43,351 nt of DNA from Trichosphaerium sp. ATCC 40318 (Eukaryota; Protista; Tubulinea): NCBI GenBank assembly GCA_038496445.1, contig JALMLS010000512.1:1-43351 (forward strand), in the 5' to 3' direction. Positions 917-35,096 of this stretch are shown here, piece by piece. The stretch's first letter is position 1; the number at the start of each line of letters is the position of its first letter. Below the pieces are notes generated by a model, which saw nothing but the letters and a program-made list of their open reading frames with translations, was not told the origin of the DNA and did not search any database. The position numbers and the translations under genes are program-made.

Positions 917-3900
917 GCTAGGTTTTGTTCATCACTGTGAGTACGTAGTACATGCTAACAAGCAAAAACTGTTTAGCTATGTTCTAAGGTAACATAGACT
1001 AAGAAAAGCGTCTTACCATTGAACAAGTTTTATTGAAAAATACCGACAATTACTTTTCTACCACTTTCTTTGTTGGCTTTTTTTTTTTGTATTTTTTATA
1101 AGTTTACATAGGTACAAGCCCTAGTTGTTGCTGCTTTGTATAAACCAAACTAACATTACATAAAGTACGTTTTTCCCAATAGCTATTCATTGTTTCAATA
1201 TCTCCAGTGTCAAAGCAATATTGTAATACAACCAAGAAAGAATCAATGTTTATAACTTCTGGATTATTTTCAAGTCCATCATCAAAGAACTTGAATAATT
1301 GTTTCTTTGTACCAGATGTTGCTATTAGTTTAATCATAATCTCATATGAACGTTGATCAATACCAAAATTCTGTTGTATTGTCTTATATAGTTCAAGTCC
1401 TTTCTGTAAGTCACCAATCTTTAAGAAACCTTCAAGTAAAATATTTATCTGACTTGTATTTACTTTTACTTTCATTATCTCACTCATTGTTTCTAAAAGT
1501 TCTGTAGCTGCTGGTATATCTTCACAAATACATGATATAGCTGTGTTTATATGAGGATCCTTATCAGAAAAAACAGAAGTAAGCATAACACACAAAACGT
1601 TACACAAAAAAAAGAATCAGAAAAGAAAAAAAAAAAAAAAAAGAAAAACTAAAAGCGTGTTCAAGCTCTTTTATGTTTTCAGGCAATAACTTGGCATCAT
1701 TGTTTCCTCATGCGTAGTGATTACAGTGATGCAATTAAGAACACTTTCATCCGTCACGGGTTTTTTTTGTTGCTTGAGTTTGAAAAAGAATATGAAGACG
1801 TAGGTTTGGGTTTATACCTTGTCATCATCATTATCACCATAAATCGTGTCATTTATGAAGTTAATCAAAGATAATTTATACTCTTTTCTCTTTTCTTCTG
1901 ATATAACAGACTCAAATATAGCTTTCCATAGAAATGCATAGGTTGCAAGTGTCTCGTCTAAATAGAGAAATGAGCTAGAGCTTGAACCTAAAAAAAAACT
2001 GTCCCGAAAAAAATAGGCAAACACGGCCTTTGTTGTTATTATTATTTTGGAGTATGTAATAAAGTGTAATTACACTGGCAGTAGAAAGTGAATTAAAAGG
2101 AAATTGTGTGATTCTTGAGTCACCACGTGAAGAAAAAAAACCAAAATAAACTAGATAAGTGCGTTTGGAGACTTCTTCTATTTTACCCTCCGCGCTGGCC
2201 AGAGAATAGTAGTTTGTAGTAAAATACGTAAAGTGTAGCAGATATAAATTGTAATAGATTATGCACAAACGTACGTTCAAGTGATTCAGCAAGGGCACGT
2301 TCAAACTCTTCCAAAGGCAATTCCATCAAAATAATAGAAAGAAGGTATGGACGTACAAAGTACTCTTTACACTCTATCATTTTACTCCTTATGGCCATAA
2401 TATGTTGTAATAGATCATTAACACGTGGTACATCCTTTGATATTGTTAATGCTTTAAGGAACCCTTCAGCTATTATCGTAAAGTGCATATACACAGCACG
2501 TTTATGAAGTGCATGCCATAGTTCTGAAGCGCTCTTAATATCACCATTATATAAATAATTCTTTAAAAGACAAGAAAACATTAAATGGGGTATCTCATTA
2601 TCACGCTATGGAAAGGGTGTTAGAAAGACTGTAAGAGAAAAACAGTTTGAAGAGGTTTTTTTTTTTGTATTGTAACACGTACAAGGTCTTTAGCTTGTAG
2701 ACAAAGTTGGTAGAGTAAATATCCAGCTTCTCTATCACAAATAGATAGAGACAATGCCATTTGTTTGTATAAAGCGGTTGCAACGTTGTGTAACGGTACA
2801 TTACGTAGAGGTTCACAGAACTATGACTTAGTTAAAAAAACTGGCTTAATAGACTTAAAGAAAAGAAAGAAAAAAAACAGACAGACGTCTTGCTGAAGCT
2901 TCCAGGCAACCTTGATCAGAAAGAGGTTGTTATTTTTTATACGACGTACTTTTACTATTTTTTCAACTTCCCCAGCCCTTGTATAATGCCGCAACATTGC
3001 TATGTCACTTTCTAATCCTCTTTTATTTTTTCTTTTAACAATATGCATGCATTTGTAAGCTTCTTCAATCTCTGTGATCATATCTCTATCATAAAGAGCA
3101 GCCAATAGACTATGAAAGGCCTATATAAATGATGAACGCTTAGAATAATATATTAAACGTCCTCAAGAGCGTCTAGAGTATAACAAAGCAGCTCAAAAAA
3201 AAACGGAAAAAAAAGGTACCTGGTTAGTTATGAAAGTGTTAGTTGATTTTGCATCTTCTAGTAACTCTAGTGCTGGTTCGATACGACCAGCGGAGCTAAG
3301 TAAATTATTAGATGACGTGTAGATTATTGAAAACCTCAGCACGTTTTTTAATGATGTCTGAAAAAGAGCAAAAATAAAAAAGAAAAAAGCACGATAGTTT
3401 CCTCGTCCTTTCAGTAATTTAGACCACCGTCAGTTATATACTCTGTTTTGTACTATACTGTACACCATAACTGACAAGAGGCCAAACAATCCGTCACATA
3501 GTGAGAGACAAAGAAAAAGTTTCAAAAAACAAGAAAAAAAGCGGAGTTGGGTTAACACCAACGCTAATACGAATAAGACTTGCCTGTATCCCCTAATCAT
3601 CACCGAAAGAAGCACTGACGAAACCAGGTTACGCACTTTATACGCCTGGTAAAAAGAATCAACTTTAAGCAACTGTCCTTGTCTGAATAAAGCGTCTATT
3701 GCTATGGATGTTGTTGTTGGTGTTTTCATATCCATTGGCAACCTTTGGTATAATTCTGTTACCATATCGTATTGTTTTTTAGCCAACGCCAAACGCATTT
3801 TGTCCACCTTTTCTAGTCTGCTATTGTCAGACAATGCAAGGTCCGCTGCACGCACAGACGGTTCAGGTTTGCTCTTTTCGCGTTTAGCGACACTGAAACC

Positions 3901-9488: not shown

Positions 9489-10531
9489 AAAAAAAAAAAA
9501 ACCAAAACAACAAAAGAACAAAGCGCCTTTTTTTTTTCTTTGGCAACAAGATGAGTGTTAATAAATAAATGTTTGCCAAAAAGGCCAATACCCATGTTTT
9601 GTTGGCCAACTAGCTTAAAAACACATTTAGAGAAATCATCGTGATAAATTGATGGGCGCGACGGCATGGTACTAACTTGTGTGGAGGTGCGTGTAAGGAA
9701 ATCCAGAGTCTTTCAAGTGTGATAGTGCCTCCAGTATCTGAAAAATCAGAATTTTTTTTAGTTTTACTTCAAATAGCAGAAAAAAGACAGCGCCAAGTAA
9801 ACAGCAGACGTTCTACATGTTTTAATAGTATTCTTTGGAATTATGCTTGTTCTTCGTGAAACTGCTTATCCAAATGAACAATATTTCGTATCATTCAAGT
9901 TACACATTTGTCTAACGGAAGGGCGTGCGTTTGAGTTTAAAAAAATACCAGAAATCGGAAATGTACATAAATTGCCATCGATTTTTTCGCTAAGTGTTTA
10001 TAATTTAAAATATACATTTATATTCCATCTTTTGACCAAGCACCACTATGTTAAGCTTATCAGTGTTTTAGTGAATGACATTCAATAATAAAAGCTATAA
10101 ATGGAATGTTTTATAATAGTAATGGAGTTGGGTCACATTGCAACAATTACTTAGAATGTTTTTCTTGTTTTTTTATTGCACAATTTTAAAAAGCTGTTTT
10201 TGTGCTACAATTCAACACGTGTTCAAAATTTCAACTGGGAACATTGACCACACACTGTATTGTTCTTTCTCAAAAAACTTTTTTGGAGTACAAAGTACAA
10301 CATGTTGCCAAAAACTGTGTTTTTTGTTTGCTCCAACTTTTTAATTAGTGGTATGTTACTTTTAGCGTACGTTACGCTTGTGTTAGCTTATTGTAACGGT
10401 TTCTTGTAAACCTTGCTGTAAGCGGTATTCTACGTTTATTAGGCGCTAAAAAATCATATACTGCATTTACGCAATTAAGTGAAACAGATTGGGATCTTAA
10501 TTATTTCAGTATCAACGCTAACAAGTCAGAA

Positions 10532-13500
10532 ATGGGTAACAAAAAATGTAAGCATGCGGTAGACAGGCTGGATAAGGCTACTAAACTGAAATCTATCAAA
10601 AAAGCTGCAATTGAAGCGAAAAAACTAGAGATAGACGAAATCACGATTCTAGTACTTGGTAGGCGTATTAAACACCGTCAGTTATTTAATTTGAAACTAA
10701 TAAACACCAGGATCGGCATTCAGCGGTTAGCACGAAATAAAAGCGGTTATTAGCTTATTCAGTCACGTAAATAGGCAAATCTACGTTTGTTAAGCATTTT
10801 TGCGTACAATTGCTTCAAGAAGATGTAGAAGCCCGACGAGATTACAACTTCGCTATTACACATCATATATGGTATTGCTTACAGGAATTTAAACGAAGTC
10901 CTTATTTTAGTCGTTGCAAGAAGGCACGGCTTACTTGCTAAAGATCTGGTATTTGATTTGGTTTAATTAATTAACTAGAGCACTCAATCCGTTATTTTGA
11001 GTCTATCGGATCCAGACGATCCTAAGTGTAATTGTAATTATAATTTCGACTCGGAGCAATCTTGTTTTGATGCTGTTAAAAAGTACGTGAAGGGAGAAAA
11101 AAACAGAATTTTCTGAGAAAGAAGTTAATAGTATTTTTACAGGCTCGTCAATTCAGACTTCATGGATGAATGTACTGCATTTAAAGAATCTCTTGTGTAC
11201 AATAGCCCTATGCATAATTTATCTATGTACGTTGATATACAAGCTGAAAATAGAATACAAAATGAACTTTCTTACTAAACTTTTTTCTATTAAGTTTATT
11301 GAACGCTGTTGCAAAAAGAACTAAAGGATGGGAAGTAACAATACCTGAAATTATGAATGTACGTATATGGACAACAGGGGTTGTAGAGAAAGAGTACCTA
11401 GGCCATAATGGTCAACAGTTTAATCTTTTGGATGTTGGTGGTACGTCTTTTTTAGTTTTAAAAGTATTTGTTGCTCAGGCTTATCACGTTTTACTTTGTA
11501 CTCAATAATACTTTTCTTTTAGTATTTGTTTATTAAAATTAGAGTTTTTTAGTATAAGCTGTGGCATTGTTGTGTTGAAGGCTTATGCTACTTTTGTTAT
11601 TTTTTGCAGTTGGCTAAGTTTTTTTTTATTAAGGTCATCGAAATGAATGGAGAAAATGGTTACATTGCTTTGGAAATGTACATTATATTTGCCATGTGGT
11701 GTCACTAACCGAGTATCTTTTTTGAATTCAAGTAAGGCATAGACAAGACACTAATCCATAGTTGTTTCGTGTTGTGACTTGTATTTTTATTGGAATTTCT
11801 TTTTTTGTTTTGTCTTTAACTCTCAAGCTTCATGTACTTGTTGTGTGAAGATTCACAAACAAATTCATACGAAAAAGCAAAACTTTTACTCTCAGAACAA
11901 ATTAGCAGTAAAGGGTTAGCACATGCCAGCGTCATTGTAGTTTTATCAAAATATGATCTTCTCAAAAAGTTAATGCCTGAGAACTTCGTTAAATTCCAAA
12001 AAATGTTTCCACACTACAAAGGTACGTTAAAAACATGCCTTATTGATCCCATAAATTAAACAAAAAGGAATTTAATTTGATTGTGGACCCTTAGACTTCA
12101 ATACAAGAATATTCCTATTTTTTTCTTTCTTTTGATCGATATCAGTTCAATCAATGCCTATAACTTTGTTTGCTTATTTTTATTGAAGGTTCCTCTGATG
12201 TTGATGAAATTGTCTTACACATCATTGAAGATTTGAAAAAGACTATTAATAAAGGAAGATACAATGTAATGTTCATATGCGGCACGCTAACAGAGTTCGA
12301 TTTGCACTTTCCCTTGGTTCGCATAATTGAGAAAATTGCTTATAAGACAAGACGTGAAGGTACTTCACTAGTACTAATTTTATGTAAATACTCACATTTT
12401 TGAAAGAGGAGACTGAGGAGAGTAAAGGGAAGCCTGAAACTCGATTTGGAAAGTCATTTAAGTCTTACTTGTTTCCTGATTTAAGTGATGCTACTATCAT
12501 TCCATCAGAGTTTAGTAGGCTCAGAGGAGATAAATATGAAGTGCTTAATGACTTTGAGTTCGAACTAAACCAAGAGTCATCGCTTAAGATCAGCAGGGTA
12601 AGAAAAAAGCAAAATATGAAATTGTGTAACTTACTTTTTTTTAGGTATTCGTGGAGAGCCAAGTGCCTGAACTGTTTGTAGACGCTGGAGAAAAAGATTC
12701 CATCCTGAAGCTTGACCATTCTTCTAGAGCGTTCAATTGTCTTATTTCTTGTATTTATGGCAAATCAGTTCAATACGATGACGAACCTTCATTTATAAAA
12801 CTGTTACAATCACTAAAAACGAATAAGCTCGTAAAAGAAATCCAAAGCACCAAACCTGGATGCTACTTTATCAATTCGAAGGGTATCAAAAGATCTTTAA
12901 AGAGACTATACAAGCATGAAGAATCAAAGGATTTAATTCTAAAGACTAGCGATGACAACGAACTGAAGTGTCACAAGGTACATTGCTTCTTTTTGCAACT
13001 TTTTTTTCTTTGTTTTGTTTACTTTTCCGAGTTTTCTTTTTATCTAGCGCCAATACTGTGATTGCTCGTAGTATTGTAATATAATAACTGATTGTATTGT
13101 TTTAGGTTATCTTAGTAGCACGCATACCGTTCTTTGAACAAATTCTGGTATCAAATCAATCAACAGATAAGAATGCTAATGTCATCAAAATTGGTGAACC
13201 TCTCCGTGTCGTCAACCTTTTATTGGATTATCTATACAAAGACAGCATTCCCTTAAACGATATATATACTCTATGGATGCTTTACAAGTTAAGTGATAAG
13301 TACCAAATCGAAAGAATGAAAGGATATGTTTTATCAGGCTTTGTAAAACATCAATGTGGTGTTGAATGCCTTGATGTCTTTTTACAGATACTAGAATACA
13401 CAATGCATATGGAAGGAGAGATTATAGAAATGATGTGTCATGATTGGTTTGTACGTCATGCTTGTGACGGACATGATTTTGTTTTAAATGAAGGAACACG

Positions 13501-13591
13501 TGATGATGTTGTTGCTTACTTGAGAACACTTCATCCTGTGCTAAGAGATACAGTTACCATTATTAACGACAACACAAGTACAAGTCTTTAA
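10532..13591 (+). CDS. Divergent heterotrimeric G-protein alpha subunit fused to two BTB/POZ domains
   Basis: Spliced frame: MGNKKC N-terminus; ILVLG-SAFS-GKST (G1); full-length helical domain; VRIWTTG (G2); LLDVGGHRNEWRKWLHCF (G3); VVLSKYDLL (G4); ICGTLT (G5 position). It continues without a stop into FGKSFKSYLFPDLSDATII...AFNCLISCIYG (degenerate BTB), then DLILKTSDDNELKCHKVILVARIPFF...LLLDYLYKD...LSDKYQIERMK (BTB). Confidence 0.85.
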
Positions 13592-14318
13592 ACAACCTGT
13601 AACTCTACAATTATAAACAATAAAGCACGTGACAATGTCCGTTGAGTAATTACGGGTCTCACTCATTATCCACAACATACTTGAAAATACATCCATCTTG
13701 ACTTGATGTAAGAGTTGGGTTACAAGGTCTAGTGCACAGTGTATTCTGTAATATCAGTCTCATTGAGGTGGGCTGCCATCGAACTTGGCTCAAGGCTTTG
13801 ATGTGAAGATTCAGCTTTGGCTGCCATTGGACTTGGCCTCCAGGAGCTTTACTGCACTGCAAAGCTTCTAAGAGCCCTCAACTGCTATCTTCGGGTTCTA
13901 CAACTGATGATTAAGGTAGTTGCGTTGTTTTTTTTTTGCACTATCTATGCAGAAGTACTTTTGACATATTCCACGCTAGTGACTATAGTCGCTCATGTTT
14001 TTTAAGTTACAGCTGTAGCTGTGCAAGATGAGCATTCCTTAAGAGTACATCAAAGTTGCCGAAAACTCTCCTTGCCGTTAGGTCTACTTCCAAGTGTTTG
14101 CTGTCTCCTACCACGTCCTTTTTGTACTTTGGTATAGTTTTCTTTGAAAGTAATTTGCACATGTTTACAACGCTTGTAAGCGTACGATCTAATTTATCCA
14201 AATACATGCCATGCTACGTAATTACTATATACAGCATATGACTTATTTTAGTGAGCGCTAGATAAGTTGCCCACGTGTTAGAGTATCTGAAACCTGTACA
14301 CACAAAGGATAAGAAATC

Positions 14319-15260
14319 ATGATGAGTGCTTTGAAATCAAAGTATTGTCACCTGTTGAACCTTCCGCTTGAGCTACAACTTGATATAGTTGATTTAGACT
14401 TTGCAGTTTATGTACAATGGCCTCTTCTATCAAAATACACGGCAACAACCACAAGGTTTGACGATGAACTAAAAAAACATGGAAAGTGGATAAAAAACAA
14501 AATTTTGTATTACTACGACAGTGAGCGAAATAAGTACTCTATCCACTACAATCGTAAGGTAAAATGGCAAAAAATTACAAGCGCCAATCTAGTGATAGCA
14601 TCAATGACCTCAACTTAAGGCCATAAACGCAGCTGCGAAATAATATTGCCTTTTTGACTTCCTGTGTTCACGTGATCTTTATTTCTTGTGACTAAAATAC
14701 GTTAGGCTGAGTGTAGTTTCAAACATGATGTGCTTCATGGGGAATACAAAGAGTGGAATCAATTTAATGATCATTTACAGCAGCATTGTTACTACATAGA
14801 TGGTTTTCTTGAAGGAGAATACAAGTGTTTTTATGATAATGGCAAAATAACCATGCACAGTTATTACATCAAAGGCAAACAAGAAGGAGAGTTCAAAGGG
14901 TGGCATGATAATGGACAGCTGCGCATGGAATACTGTCGTGTTGATGGGGAGCTGGAAGGAGAGTATAAAGCATGGCACAGAAATGGCCAATTAGCAGCAA
15001 AATACAGCTGTATTAAAAGTAAACCGCATGGAGAGCACAAGATATGGTACAGTGACGGTCAAATTAGATGTGTAATTATGAACAGGTATGGCACATGTGA
15101 ATGGAGCAAACAGTGGGATATTAACGGTCAATTAATTGCAGAATATCATCGCACAATACTTATGGATTGTTGGTGTTATTTTGTTTGCATTGTAATGCTA
15201 GCAGTTGGTTTTTTGATTATTTATGTAATTAGCACTATCTTGTGCTTGTTCTTAATTTGA
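14319..15260 (+). CDS. F-box-like N-terminus, MORN-variant repeats and C-terminal transmembrane anchor
   Basis: LLNLPLELQLDIV (F-box-like); probable intron ~14559-14705; ~5-6 repeats of the type LEGEYKxWxxNGQL; hydrophobic tail YFVCIVMLAVGFLIIYVISTILCLFLI. Confidence 0.75.
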
Positions 15261-20192: not shown

Positions 20193-20978
20193 TTACAAAA
20201 TTGCAGTGTGATTTGGCCCCAGTGCTTTAAGACCTTCATCTGTTACTGAAGTAAAAACAAGCTGCATATTGTGAACTCCAATAAGCGCTTTAATGCCTTC
20301 ATCTGATACTGAAGTGTGAGAAAGGCTAATGGTATGAACACCAGCAAGCGCTTTAACACCTTCATCTGTTACTGAAGTGTGAGAAAGGCTAATGGTATGA
20401 ACACCAGCAAGTGCTTTTACACCTTCATCAGTTAGATTGTTACATAAAGAAAGGTCAATTGTATGAACGCCGGCAAGCGCTTTAACACCTTCATCCGTCA
20501 CTGAAGTTCTAGAAAGGTTTATAGAATGCACTCCGGCTAGTGCTTTTACACCTTCATCTGTTACATTACAGCGTTTCAAATTTATAGTGTGTACACCTGC
20601 CAATGCTTTCAATCCTTCATTTGATACTTTTGTGGTTGATACATTTATAGTGTGTACGCCAGCAAACTTTTTGATAACATTGTCATCAAAACAACCACCG
20701 CAAAGTACGATATAAGTATGTCTGAGAATGCCTTGATGTTGTAGAACTGATTTCGCTTGCATTACAGTTCTAACAGTGATAGTGTCGTAGCCAATAACAT
20801 CATGGATGATAGATGCAAGCAAATGGCAGGTCTGGGAAGCGGTAAATCGTGATTTGGTGGTTTGGCGTAGTATATGCGCTAATATCTCTGTGGGCAGTTG
20901 TAGTAAACAAGCACAGGCAGTTTCGTTGATTGTAACGTGTCCTGAGGGGAAAGCACAGTATTTTGTCTTTGTAGTCAT
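20193..20978 (-). CDS. Intronless F-box plus leucine-rich-repeat protein (261 aa)
   Basis: LLQLPTEILAHIL F-box followed by ~7 near-identical 21-22 aa LRRs (GVHTIxLSxTSVTDEGVKALA). Confidence 0.9.
   Translation of the reverse strand: MTTKTKYCAFPSGHVTINETACACLLQLPTEILAHILRQTTKSRFTASQTCHLLASIIHDVIGYDTITVRTVMQAKSVLQHQGILRHTYIVLCGGCFDDNVIKKFAGVHTINVSTTKVSNEGLKALAGVHTINLKRCNVTDEGVKALAGVHSINLSRTSVTDEGVKALAGVHTIDLSLCNNLTDEGVKALAGVHTISLSHTSVTDEGVKALAGVHTISLSHTSVSDEGIKALIGVHNMQLVFTSVTDEGLKALGPNHTAIL
20220..20680 (-). repeat. 63-66 bp tandem repeat encoding the LRR units
   Basis: The recurring unit ccttcatc...gtgtgagaaaggctaatggtatgaacaccagcaagcgcttta is visible at DNA level. Confidence 0.85.
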
Positions 20979-22951: not shown

Positions 22952-25900
22952 ATGTCTGAACAAAAACAAAGTACAGAAGAAACACTATCGTTCGAAAGTT
23001 AGTAACAATAAATAGAAATATGAACCCTATGCATTTTTAACAGTTCCAAATGTAGACGAATTGGCGATACTGAGCATAATATACGAAAGTATTAAAACAG
23101 GTGCACTTAATCTTAACATTGCTTAAGATGTTTGACAATCTGTAGTAAAGGACCTAAATAGCAGTTTATGTGAAGAAGAGTCAGCTGACACAATACTATT
23201 GCATGCAGGTATGTATCGAACCACAGGTGAATATCAACTGGATTTTAGCACAGAATGGTCTGGCTTTTATTACAACAATGTGTATACATAAGGGTGCGAG
23301 CCTTGAATATGCAAACAGTGATGGTTGGACACCTCTATATTGTGCAGGTAGCTTATTGTCAGAGTATTCTTTTGTAATTTTTATTTCTAGCACGTTATGG
23401 CCATAGTAAAGTTGTCAAAATACTACTTAGTTCAAAAGCAAATATTGAAGCAAAAGATTATTTTGGATCTACAGTTCTCCATCGTGCAGGTACCTTATCA
23501 TTGTCATTATTCAATTATTGTAACTTGTACCTATAGCGCGTCATGGACAGACCGAAGTTGTTACAATATTACTTGGCGCAGGTGCTGATATTAAAAAAAA
23601 AGATAAGTATGGATGGACAGCTCTCCATCGTGCAGGTAGCTTATTTTTGTTGTCGCTACACCTTTGATGGTAATTTGTGTTTATAGCACGTGGTGGATAC
23701 TGTCAAGTTGTTGAAATATTACTTCGTTCAGGTGCTGATATTAAAGCAAAAGATAATTTTCGATTTACAGCTCTCCATCGAGCAGGTAGCTTATTTTTGT
23801 CTTCACACGCTTGCTTAAAACTTTAACTAGCACGTAATGGACACACTAAAGTTGTTGAAATATTGCTTGAATCAAACGCAGATATTGAAGCAAAAAACAA
23901 ATTTAGAGTGGCACCTCTTCATGTTGCAGGTCGCTAATATTGGTGTTACGTATTTGTTTTTACTGCCTACTAGCACATCATGGACAGAGTAAAGTTGTTA
24001 AAATACTACTTGGGTCAAATGTAGATATTGAACCAAAAGACAAAGAAGGAAGGACACCTCTTCATCGTGCAGGTACATTTTGGTATCTTGTTATTACACT
24101 TGTTTTAACTTTTACTCTAGCTAATCAAGGACATAGTAGAGTTGTTGAATTATTACTTGGAGCAAATGCTGATGTAGAAGTAAAGTCTAACAATGGATGG
24201 ACAGTTCTCTATCGCGCAGGTGCCTTACTGTCGTCATTGTACACTTTGTAACTTTTACCTCTAGCGCATCAAGGTCACAATAAAGTTGTTGAAATTTTAC
24301 TTGGTTCAAATGCAGATACTGAAGCTAAAGACAAAGATGGATGGACGGCTCTCCAGTGCGCAGGTACTGTATTGTGTCTATACAATTACTATAACGTTCT
24401 TTAGCATATTATGGACATAATTCTGTAGTTGTTACTTTATTGAAATGTTGTAAAGACATTTCATTGTTTACAGCCATATGGCAAAAGATAGTTGATAAGA
24501 TACTACTGCGTGTTATTGCTAATGATTCTTCATTTGTTGCTGTATTTGAAACTGTGTTGACATTATTCCCAGATGGTAAGCCTTCTATTACGCTATGGTT
24601 AAAATACGCAACAATGAACCAAACACCACAATGGAGACTCAATCTTGCAAAATGGTTGCAACACTTGGTATGTCCTTTCTTTTTCACAAAGCTTGTAAAC
24701 TAATTGTTATCACAACAGCCAACACGATCTTATTTTAAACTTGCATTACAAAAAGGGATTTGTTATTTAATCTGTACATATGATCGCATAGTTGTACAAT
24801 CTTCAGTACGACCACTGTTCATTTTGTGACATTCAAATAACAAGTTGTTTTTTAAAGAGTTTTTGGATTCAGCATGGAGAAGTCATGGAAGGCATACTAT
24901 ATGACTTACCTGAGCGCATGTGGATCAATACAAAACAAAAAAGCTGTATTGAGATATGTAAAAAAGAAGGATGGTGCACAAACTCCCTTAGAGTAGCTAC
25001 GCAAGATGGTACATTAGCTACAATGCAATTTCTTTAACTTCCTGTATAGTTTGGAAGTGCTACAACTGTAAATTGTATTTGTGTCGGTATTGTGTTGGTA
25101 AACATACTCCAAACCATGTAATATCTTTACTAATGTTGGTTATTAACTTGGCATAGATGTTAAAAAAACTGTCCGATACTGTTTATGTGTGTCAGTGCCA
25201 AGATTGTAAACATGGCATTAATCCTACCTCTGTAAATCTTGCACTTGGTTTCTCACGTGCAGGTACACGTTTTTGACAGTGATAAACTAACATGCTGAAA
25301 CCAAGGATTAACAAGCGAAACCTTGTGGGACTTAAACCCAAGATTACAACATGGTCATCACTGGGATAGATCTAACATCAAGTCAGTATTCTTCTACTGA
25401 TAGTTTGTCTAACTTTATTCAAAGGGGAACTGTTGAAAGAGCAACACATTATAGAACGTTGAATCTGTTCGATGACAACACTGTGGCTAAGAGAGAACTT
25501 GAGTTTCTTCATCAACAACTATCAAAAATGCCTGGATATGATAGAGTAACTGTTGTAGAAGCACTTCTTGTATGTAATGATGTCTTGACTCGTAACTTTG
25601 GAATGTACAATACAATAGTGAAACACAGACATCAGTACGTTTAACAAATAATATTAGCTAAACGCCACGAGACCTTACACTTATTTAGAGAGCTCCCCAA
25701 GCTATTTTGTAAAGATGAATGGAAACAAGACAGTCATAAGAGAGCAGTAGCTGCGAGGTTTGAAGCTGTAATCAACGACAACAGCTCCACTTTAGAACAG
25801 GTAATGTCATTCAACATTAATCATCTTACACGTTTTCAGTCACCAGTTTTATTGATGGTTCATGGTACATCTCCTGAAGCTGCTTTGAGTATTGTAAAAG

Positions 25901-33611: not shown

Positions 33612-35096
33612 CTATTCAAGCCGATTTTTATGCACAATAGAAGGACCACATTCGTCATATTCTTCTTTAGGTATACACAATTGGTCAAACATAGGTAGGG
33701 AAGAAAGTACAGAACCACCAGCCCAAACAGAGTACTTTTTCGGTTCAACGATCTCAACTTTTATATTGTCAGATGCAAGAGCACTCACCTCTTTCTTCAT
33801 GCGATCAGTAATACCTGTGAACATACTAGAACCACCAGAGAGTACGATGTTACCGTACAAGTCTTTATAGAGACCACAACCACACTTCAAGATTGAGTTA
33901 TGTACTAACTCATGAATTCCAGGTGATTTAACATCAAGCAATGAAGGTTGAAAGAGTGCTTCAGGGCATCTGAAACGCTCATTACCAACAGTTATTGTTC
34001 TACCGTCAGGGAATTCATGTGACTTCTTGATTGAAGAGGATGATTCAGCTGTGCTCATTTCTTGTTTAAAGTCAAGAGAAACATAGCAGAGCTTCTCTTT
34101 CATGTCACGAATAATTTCTCTCTCGGCTGCTACGAAAGCTTGACCATCCTTTGATGGTGAGGCAAAAGAGTAGCCGCTTTCAGAGAGTATTTTCATCAAA
34201 TAATCAGTGAGATCACGACCAGCTAAATCCATACGCATGATACAGTTATCGATGGTTCTACCTTCGAAAATAGGTACAACATGTGTTACACCATAACCAG
34301 AATCAAGAACAAGACCTGAAGATATCAAAGTTAGTAAGTACGAAAGAAAGCAAAGAATTTGTTTTTGAATTTCTTGTTTTTTTGTTAAGTTGACTAGCAC
34401 ACCTGTTGTTCTTCCAGAAGCATACAAAGACAATACTGACTGTACTTCAGCGTATAACGCCTTCAAATTGAAAGTCTCAAACATGATCTGGGTCCTCTTC
34501 TCTCTAAAGTAACAATAGGTAAGCAAAAACAACAACTTCTTTTTTCGGAATCTTCAAAAAAAACAATAAAAGTGTAAAAGGACAGTTCTGTGTACTTGTC
34601 TGCTTTTGTGGTCAATGGTGCTTCAGAGAGGAGAACTGGGTGATCTTCTGGTGTAACATGGAGTTCGTTGAAGGCGGTATGCCATATTTTCTCCATATCG
34701 TCCCAGTTGGTTACAATACCACGTTCAATTGGGTACGTCAAGGTTTGAACGGCGCGTTTGGCTTGCGCTTCTTTACTTACGTATGATTCCTCTTTTTCCT
34801 TGCTGTGAGCGACAACAGACGCGAAGATAGAACGTGGGCAGTCATCGCCAGAAAAACCAGCTTTACACAACCCGGATCCATTATCTACCACCAAAGCTTT
34901 TACTATGAATGAAATTAGAGCGTGTCCGTTGCGTTTGAGTAAAAACGGGAGTTTTAGCGTAAAACTATGCTGACACGCGCATAAATGCTATAAAACAAGT
35001 TGTGGTTGCGTCACGTATGGTTATAACGCAATGAGGTTTTGTAATACCCGAAAGGGCCTGTTAAGGCTCTTGTACCATACCATTATCGTCACACAT
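33612..35096 (-). CDS. Divergent actin (4 exons)
   Basis: [26 protein letters not shown]..., [77 protein letters not shown]. Many departures from conventional actin. Confidence 0.95.

Follow-up and report, generated by a model that had tools for sequence, protein, structure and literature searches.

Contig JALMLS010000512.1 of Trichosphaerium sp. ATCC 40318 (assembly GCA_038496445.1), whose entire 43,351 nucleotides (nt) form the window analyzed here, carries on its + strand a gene that very probably joins a heterotrimeric G-alpha domain to two BTB domains, BTB1 and BTB2. Positions 10532–13591 can be read as a single frame, spliced at GT-AG introns from 12 or 13 exons, for a product of 667–692 amino acids, and it is shown, or very nearly so, that this interval is one transcribed gene. 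That its architecture is a single-gene fusion is very probable. The G-alpha-BTB-BTB layout was found in no paper or protein library that we searched; it is of the same kind as known GTPase-BTB fusions such as RhoBTB. The explanation we favor, a fusion acting as a RhoBTB-like Cullin-3 adaptor, appears moderately probable when taken as a whole.

One spliced frame from G-alpha to the second BTB

The window is AT-rich (about 35% GC) and eukaryotic in character, with short GT-AG introns. We assembled the exon chain by hand and by script; the joined sequences served for translation checks and local hidden Markov model (HMM) comparison only, and the family, PDB and library searches were done exon by exon. 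In its simplest stop-free form the chain comprises 12 exons and 674 codons and stops only at its end. Its introns are all GT-AG, measure 46–193 nt and open in most cases with the donor GTAC. Two further stop-free chains give 667 and 692 residues. The start codon ATG lies at 10532 and the stop TAA at 13589–13591. A polyadenylation-type signal, AATAAA, follows on the same strand at 13619–13624, i.e. 28 nt past the stop, and RNA-type contigs end at 13616 and 13633.

RNA-type support comes from Logan contigs of three public runs of one study, which are 94–99% identical to the window. A contig of 183 nt from run X3 spans 10527–10659, and its letters then continue as the 15-nt micro-exon 2 (10711–10725) and the first bases of exon 3. 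The micro-exon, which encodes the P-loop core (G)SAFS(G), and both its flanking GT-AG splices (introns of 52 and 49 nt) are thus confirmed. A 602-nt contig of run X1 joins 12887–12975 to 13104 across a GT..AG gap; with the cut shifted by +2 this gap is 12978–13105, the intron between exons 11 and 12. Thus exons 11 and 12 are transcribed and spliced together. A reading of the DNA made earlier from the sequence alone (hereafter the sequence-only reading) had proposed one spliced frame running from G-alpha through two BTBs, with a P-loop GSAFSGKST partly encoded by the micro-exon. Both proposals hold: the GT-AG chain is stop-free, the joints between exons 1, 2 and 3 and between exons 11 and 12 are seen in contigs, and the micro-exon is spliced in the X3 contig. 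Differences between contigs and window are non-synonymous in 7 cases out of 10 in exon 8, and in 3 out of 8 in exons 11–12.

Several observations weigh against taking the contigs as a complete confirmation of this gene. They cover neither 10733–11731 nor 12065–12841, so that the helical-domain exons and the 12359/12407 splice lie outside RNA coverage. The exon-1 contig of X3 has one extra A in the A-run 10592–10597, which shifts the frame in that copy; the extra A, at 10597, is an error of this contig, whose depth is 4, or else comes from a paralogue that is broken or has diverged. Run X1 contributes a 251-nt contig over 11749–11982, which includes 79 nt that we model as intron (11749–11827). 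It is probably unspliced RNA or DNA carry-over, probably of a close paralogue. With 94–99% identity the contigs may stem from a near-identical paralogue or a related strain; within the window we found no paralogue of the G-alpha-BTB gene. What the contigs show is that a gene of this kind is expressed, with splicing as in our model; strictly, they do not show it for this locus. The 251-nt contig begins with Illumina adapter letters and has two indels in its intron part.

The joint between the G-alpha and BTB parts was considered separately. Exon 9 (12189–12359) ends in phase 1 and is followed by an intron of 47 nt (12360–12406, GTACTT...GAAAG), sized like its neighbors (46–52 nt) and phase-compatible on both sides. 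Downstream, the BTB exons form an open frame of 335 codons with a positive codon bias, and no Met occurs in the first 231 codons past the junction; exon 10 (12407–12597) and exon 11 (12645–12977) both lack an in-frame ATG. The BTB exons are therefore not translatable on their own. The 47 nt of the gap are also too short to hold a terminator, a promoter and a start codon, which makes a gene boundary implausible at this place. Given the compatible phases, the 231 Met-less codons and the lack of room in the gap, two separate genes are very unlikely.

A variant of this idea is that the locus yields two products: a stand-alone G-alpha made by retention of the 47-nt intron, and BTB exons that are untranslated or carried on another transcript. 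It would agree with the fact that no contig spans the 12359/12407 junction, and intron-bearing RNA of this gene family does exist (the contig 11749–11982). Retention of the intron brings a stop at 12401–12403 and adds just 14 codons, whose tail (...CKYSHF) is hydrophobic and contains a Cys. On the other side, the gap between the two parts is only 47 nt, the intron contains no polyadenylation signal, and the BTB exons are transcribed and spliced, with their long open frame, their codon bias and no start codon within reach. We regard the two-product scheme as highly improbable. A more limited form of it concerns isoforms. With 12360–12403 retained, the G-alpha would end in ...EGTSLVLILCKYSHF, hydrophobic and with a Cys near its end, loosely like the CGLF of Gi. 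Judging from this predicted tail, an intron-retained G-alpha could be an alternative stand-alone isoform next to the fusion.

The G-alpha half and its helical domain

From its sequence the G-alpha domain is very divergent but recognizable. Exons 7 (11634–11712) and 8 (11828–12021) match the Pfam G-alpha family (PF00503) in colinear fashion: exon 7 with E 2.3e-6 and 27.5 bits over profile positions 193–219, exon 8 with E 1.5e-9 and 37.9 bits over positions 222–281. Each exon taken alone is below the gathering score of 48.8 bits. In phmmer searches of the PDB, exon 7 matched 335 distinct G-alpha sequences, and the neighbors of exon 8 in a language-model atlas are G-alpha clusters. Exon 7 contains switch II (RNEWRKWLHCFGNV), close to that of Gq and Gi, and beta4; exon 8 contains alpha3, beta5 and the G4 motif.

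The motifs that bind and hydrolyze nucleotide are partly kept and partly altered. Exon 1 (10532–10658, ending in phase 1) encodes the start and the N-terminal helix, then beta1 as far as the opening Gly of the P-loop. The complete loop, GSAFSGKST, arises by splicing of exon 1 to the micro-exon and on to exon 3, and it has the form GxxxxGK[ST]. It has an Ala at the position equivalent to Gly12 of Ras and Gly42 of Gi1. Exon 6 (11295–11440) encodes the end of the helical domain, switch I, beta2-beta3 and DVG + G. By inspection of the translation, switch I (NVRIWTTGVVE) keeps its Arg, as had been claimed, and also its Mg-binding Thr. DVGG follows 23 residues past this Arg. The next residue is His, i.e. 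DVGGH replaces the DxxGQ motif and its catalytic Gln. Residues 2–27 of exon 7 align to residues 205–230 of G-alpha-i1 in the PDB search, so that the His takes the position of Gln204, in agreement with the DVGGQ-to-DVGGH change read from the sequence alone. The SKYD reported in place of NKxD is likewise found: exon 8 aligns to residues 256–315 of Gs with LSKYD opposite LNKQD. Lys and Asp are kept in this G4 motif and Ser replaces Asn.

The N-terminus encoded by exon 1 is MGNKKC, with a basic patch and the Gly2/Cys6 motif of lipidation type that had been pointed out earlier. It fits the N-myristoylation pattern of PROSITE, G-{EDRKHPFYW}-x(2)-[STAGCN]-{P}. Its Gly2 is presumably N-terminal, although an AG acceptor is present at 10508–10509, ahead of the start codon. 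At the other end of the domain, exon 9 is expected to encode G5 (FICGT) and alpha5. The G5 assignment follows from position only; the position and length of exon 9 fit the remaining 52 positions of the Pfam G-alpha profile, and the exon ends about 3 residues before the usual end of G-alpha.

A frame break seemed at first to follow switch II. Read through, the frame of exon 7 ends at a TGA (11723); the strong donor at 11729 does not fit the phase. This break is gone with the donor GA/GTATCT at 11713 (cut at the slash), which gives SLT-D-FMYLLCED (SLTDFMYLLCED), with the spacing of the canonical ALSDYDLVLAED.

In the helical domain the exon chain is ambiguous. Exon 3 (10775–10871) encodes GKST, alpha1, linker 1 and the start of the helical domain; its 3' end, at the donor GTATTG (10872), is provisional. 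In the simplest chain it is followed by a 109-nt intron (10872–10980), in which alternative chains place 25–120 nt of helical-domain coding sequence. Exon 4 (10981–11082, donor GTACGT at 11083) has an open frame with a positive codon score, and its start is provisional, at 10979, 10981, 11002 or 11027. Exon 5 (11143–11226), predicted to belong to the helical domain too, is phase-consistent between GT-AG introns of 60 and 68 nt. As predicted from sequence, the exons 10775–10871 and 10981–11082 are thus to be taken as provisional.

Between about 10789 and 11056 the frame of exon 3 meets a stop at 10939, and the +1 frame holds a helix-like stretch at 10829–10948. If introns shorter than 40 nt are left aside, the four chains that score best all end exon 3 at 10871. 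Two of the best-scoring chains have a single intron, of 109 or 130 nt, past 10871. Depending on the exon model, 114–132 residues separate GKST from the switch-I Arg. This spacing is about 130 residues in Gi1. A chain with introns of 25 nt (10804–10828) and 30 nt (10949–10978) is stop-free and gives a spacing of 132 vs about 130. We did not adopt it because the other introns of the window are all of at least 45 nt (range 45–193 nt; 45–51 nt in the ankyrin cassettes). A chain that keeps only the last 25 nt of the +1 stretch (10924–10948) also requires a 30-nt intron. More generally, any alternative helical-domain coding in 10872–10980 requires 25/30-nt introns or a 1-nt frame shift. The ankyrin cassettes that served as yardstick for intron length lie at 23380–23930, with one repeat per 99-nt exon and introns of about 45–51 nt.

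A number of these results count against a complete and intact G-alpha. As many as 174 stop-free GT-AG chains with introns of at least 40 nt fit the interval 10789–11056, and codon statistics mildly favor a reading with a frame shift or a 30-nt intron: the codon log-odds are positive in the frame of exon 3 as far as about 10869 and negative beyond it, and over 10871–10948 they favor the +1 frame. Among the 174–656 valid chains the gap in log-odds is 1–3 bits, too weak to choose. Moreover, taken singly, exons 3–6 and 9 gave no G-alpha match in Pfam, nor did the helical-domain pieces and exons 6 and 9 in phmmer searches of the PDB. Of the claim that the gene contains a full G-alpha, the G-alpha identity stands, with the motifs and the Pfam matches of exons 7 and 8; its fullness is unsecured, owing to the ambiguous helical-domain exons between 10789 and 11056. 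A last reservation concerns function. In other GTPases, of the EF-Tu type, a His can be catalytic, and therefore it is not certain that the domain is GTPase-dead.

These same data bear on the possibility that an expanded gene family has here a copy in decay, which is transcribed, frame-broken in its helical domain and without a functional protein. The switch of codon log-odds from the frame of exon 3 to the +1 frame would agree with such a break, as would the fact that a full-size helical domain requires 25/30-nt introns, seen nowhere else in the window. But 174 stop-free chains exist with introns of normal size, the simplest with the single 109-nt intron, and the other apparent break, past switch II, was resolved by the donor 11713 with canonical spacing. 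The remaining exons are intact, and several of the differences in related contigs are synonymous. We consider decay of the gene improbable and keep the reading of a coding fusion.

The BTB half and the search for relatives

Exon 10 encodes a linker and the N-terminal part of BTB1. Between the G-alpha and BTB domains this linker is about 50 residues long, acidic/charged, with two Pro only. Exon 11 encodes the rest of BTB1, the inter-BTB linker and the first strands of BTB2. Exon 12 (13106–13591) encodes the core of BTB2, helices resembling a 3-box/BACK, the C-terminal tail and the stop.

BTB2 is the clearer of the two domains. Exon 12 matches the Pfam BTB family (PF00651) with 27 bits vs a cut-off of 20.5. 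A phmmer search with exon 12 of 1.84 billion representative proteins gave five matches at E ≤1e-3, of which four are distant multi-BTB proteins with BACK_BPM_SPOP. BTB2, i.e. exon 12 and the last part of exon 11, aligns to the BTBs of these four true matches with 36–44 bits, and the alignment to two of them (P0002 and P0003) extends into the start of their BACK. The top match of the search (P0001, 1950 amino acids, E 9e-35 over 27 stretches) was discarded: it is a NAM-domain protein with long repeats and no Pfam BTB, hence a repeat/low-complexity artefact.

A model of exon 12 built from a 7-row alignment reached a predicted local distance difference test score (pLDDT) of 69, i.e. a middling confidence; a single-sequence AlphaFold model (pLDDT 40) was unusable. 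With VIA-align the 7-row model superposes on the BTB/3-box of SPOP with Z 9.1–9.3 (at Z 9.1, root-mean-square deviation 3.4 Å over 111 residues), aligning to SPOP 216–329. Next come the BTB/3-box of KEAP1 (Z 8.9) and KLHL22 in its Cul3 complex (Z 8.5). The best structural neighbors of BTB2, over 111–139 residues, are all Cul3 adaptors. As far as sequence and modelling go, BTB2 is SPOP/KEAP1-like, and the helices that follow it probably resemble a 3-box.

BTB1 is much weaker. Exon 11 matches the Pfam BTB family with E 0.075, and BTB1 scores 7.8 bits against a local BTB HMM built without it, a value reached by 1 shuffle in 1000. The colinear alignment of BTB1 with BTB2 is weak, and a phmmer search of the PDB with exon 11 gave no BTB match.

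Some of these results make a Cullin-3 adaptor less secure. Judged by its sequence, BTB1 is degenerate and barely detectable. The Pfam BACK models did not match exon 12. Foldseek placed SPOP and KBTBD4 on top for the exon 12 model, but only at E 0.011–0.2. The structural match is supportive and not independent, because the model was built on a SPOP-like alignment. In the alpha3-beta4 loop, which contacts Cul3, the acidic motif residue is not obvious by eye; the residue-level alignment is unreliable there.

It could thus be argued that the fusion is real and that its BTBs are a dimerization/oligomerization scaffold only, the product being a G-alpha signalling platform that multimerizes, cycles slowly and takes no part in ubiquitin ligation. 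Self-association is the primary function of BTB domains (PMC4931677), and the degenerate BTB1, the unmatched Pfam BACK/3-box models and the weak matches of BTB2 to solved Cul3 adaptors (E 0.14 by sequence for KBTBD4; Foldseek E at least 0.011) would all suit a scaffold. Against this, the best structural neighbors of BTB2 are all Cul3 adaptors and the match includes the 3-box region, and its nearest sequence relatives bear BACK_BPM_SPOP. We therefore hold a pure scaffold to be clearly unlikely and retain an adaptor role as the working explanation.

The same searches addressed the novelty of the architecture. Among the exon 12 matches in the 1.84 billion representatives there was no close relative and no G-alpha+BTB protein, and a scan of metagenome contigs with exon 12 found no relatives. 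A full-text literature search for G-alpha with BTB found none, and BTB goes unmentioned in the survey by de Mendoza et al. of architectures in the G-protein-coupled receptor pathway (PMC3971589). The sequence-only reading, which did not know the fusion as a characterized family, agrees with this blank in the literature and in the representative library.

A possible link from G-alpha to Cullin-3

The closest known system in layout is RhoBTB (RhoBTB1–3 and Dictyostelium RacA): an N-terminal GTPase with altered catalytic residues, a linker, two BTBs and a C-terminal 3-box/BACK-like region. RhoBTB has tandem BTBs, binds Cullin-3 through BTB1 and is proposed to be autoinhibited by its GTPase domain; it has an Asn at the position equivalent to Gly12 of Ras (PMC4931677). 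The analogy drawn earlier is apt, and slightly stronger than was claimed, since the Gly12 equivalent is replaced here also, by Ala, and since a putative 3-box-like element follows BTB2. Disparities nevertheless appear. By the matches of its exons the GTPase is here a heterotrimeric G-alpha and not a Rho, and it has a predicted helical insert, an Arg in switch I and a lipidation motif at its N-terminus. The linker, proline-rich in RhoBTB, is acidic here. The first BTB of RhoBTB is bipartite, whereas the BTB1-BTB2 alignment makes no insertion evident in our BTB1, and the better-preserved BTB is here BTB2 instead of BTB1. Sequence searches revealed no specific relation of the BTB exons to the BTBs of RhoBTB.

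Other systems share parts of the layout. In the model, BTB2 and the following helices superpose on the BTB/3-box of the SPOP/MATH-BTB and KLHL/KEAP1 adaptors, but G-alpha takes the place of MATH or Kelch, the BTBs are in tandem and the Pfam BACK models are unmatched. KCTD5, a BTB protein, targets G-beta-gamma to Cul3 (PMC10348674). The KCTD5/KCTD2/KCTD17-Cullin-3 ligases thus resemble the pathway logic proposed here, a BTB protein linking heterotrimeric G-protein subunits to Cullin-3; they differ by a T1/pentameric BTB, by binding G-beta-gamma via a separate C-terminal domain and by having no G-alpha in the adaptor. GTPases of the ARF family have repeatedly gained BTB or F-box domains, an independent case of TRAFAC GTPases acquiring a ubiquitin-ligase adaptor domain; it concerns another GTPase family, and G-alpha fusions are not reported there (PMC8358228).

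The canonical and atypical G-alphas (Gi/Gq/Gs, plant XLG, self-activating protist G-alphas) share with our protein the P-loop, switches I and II, G4, the N-terminal helix and the lipidation motif. In plant XLG the extension is at the N-terminus. In contrast to canonical G-alphas, our protein has His for Gln204, Ala for the Gly42 equivalent and SKYD for NKxD, and it has no free alpha5 C-terminus: about 335 residues of the BTB module follow in frame.

From these comparisons a mechanism can be proposed. We infer Cullin-3 recruitment, GTPase loss, membrane anchoring and receptor uncoupling. The protein would reside at membranes, N-myristoylated and possibly palmitoylated. Its G-alpha module would bind guanine nucleotide, because the P-loop, the Ser/Thr Mg ligands, DVGG and the Lys and Asp of G4 are kept, and would hydrolyze GTP slowly or not at all, because Gln204 is replaced by His and the Gly42 equivalent by Ala. 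Coupling to receptors through a free alpha5 C-terminus would not take place. The BTB2/3-box module would dimerize and recruit Cullin-3 as in RhoBTB, a prediction based on the BTB/3-box resemblance and on the RhoBTB precedent. The G-alpha module might then either recognize the substrate with its surface or gate the BTB module from within the molecule. Recognition would use the conserved face of switch II, to which G-beta-gamma, RGS proteins and effectors bind, and the likely output would be ubiquitination of partners from the G-protein pathway and of the protein itself. By its analogies and its modelled BTB2 this Cullin-3 adaptor mechanism is tentative, with chances slightly below even.

A broader proposal places the gene in a lineage-specific family whose members are Cullin-3 substrate receptors anchored to membranes. 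A GTP-locked G-alpha would be their recognition module, and G-beta-gamma, RGS or other partners of the G-protein pathway would be delivered in a manner dependent on the nucleotide state. In this full form we judge the proposal speculative and rather unlikely.

If it is true, heterotrimeric G-protein signalling would be wired directly into the ubiquitin system. The GTPase-BTB fusions known so far involve Rho (RhoBTB) and a few ARF-family proteins, and in animals heterotrimeric G-protein subunits meet Cullin-3 only via separate adaptors, e.g. KCTD5. A natural G-alpha-BTB-BTB would add a G-alpha that evolution has connected directly to a probable ligase adaptor. In this G-alpha two positions, the equivalents of Gln204 and Gly42, carry substitutions expected to impair hydrolysis, and the tail is not free to couple to receptors. 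The gene would offer a ready test of whether the nucleotide state of a G-alpha can gate a BTB adaptor, and possibly a natural means of directing G-beta-gamma or RGS proteins to turnover. The case also illustrates how different GTPase families recruit domains convergently.

Other genes were noted in the window. Open frames match MORN repeats at 14730–15257 (+ strand, E 2.7e-16), F-box and LRR_6 at 20196–20978 (- strand, E 7.6e-25) and, weakly, PPR at 1107–1607 (- strand). These neighbors are unrelated to the G-alpha-BTB gene and add ubiquitin-adaptor content to the window. A divergent actin gene lies at 33615–34880 on the - strand. It has at least two introns, one of which is in frame, measures about 84 nt and falls inside ...ASGRTTG / GLVLDSG...

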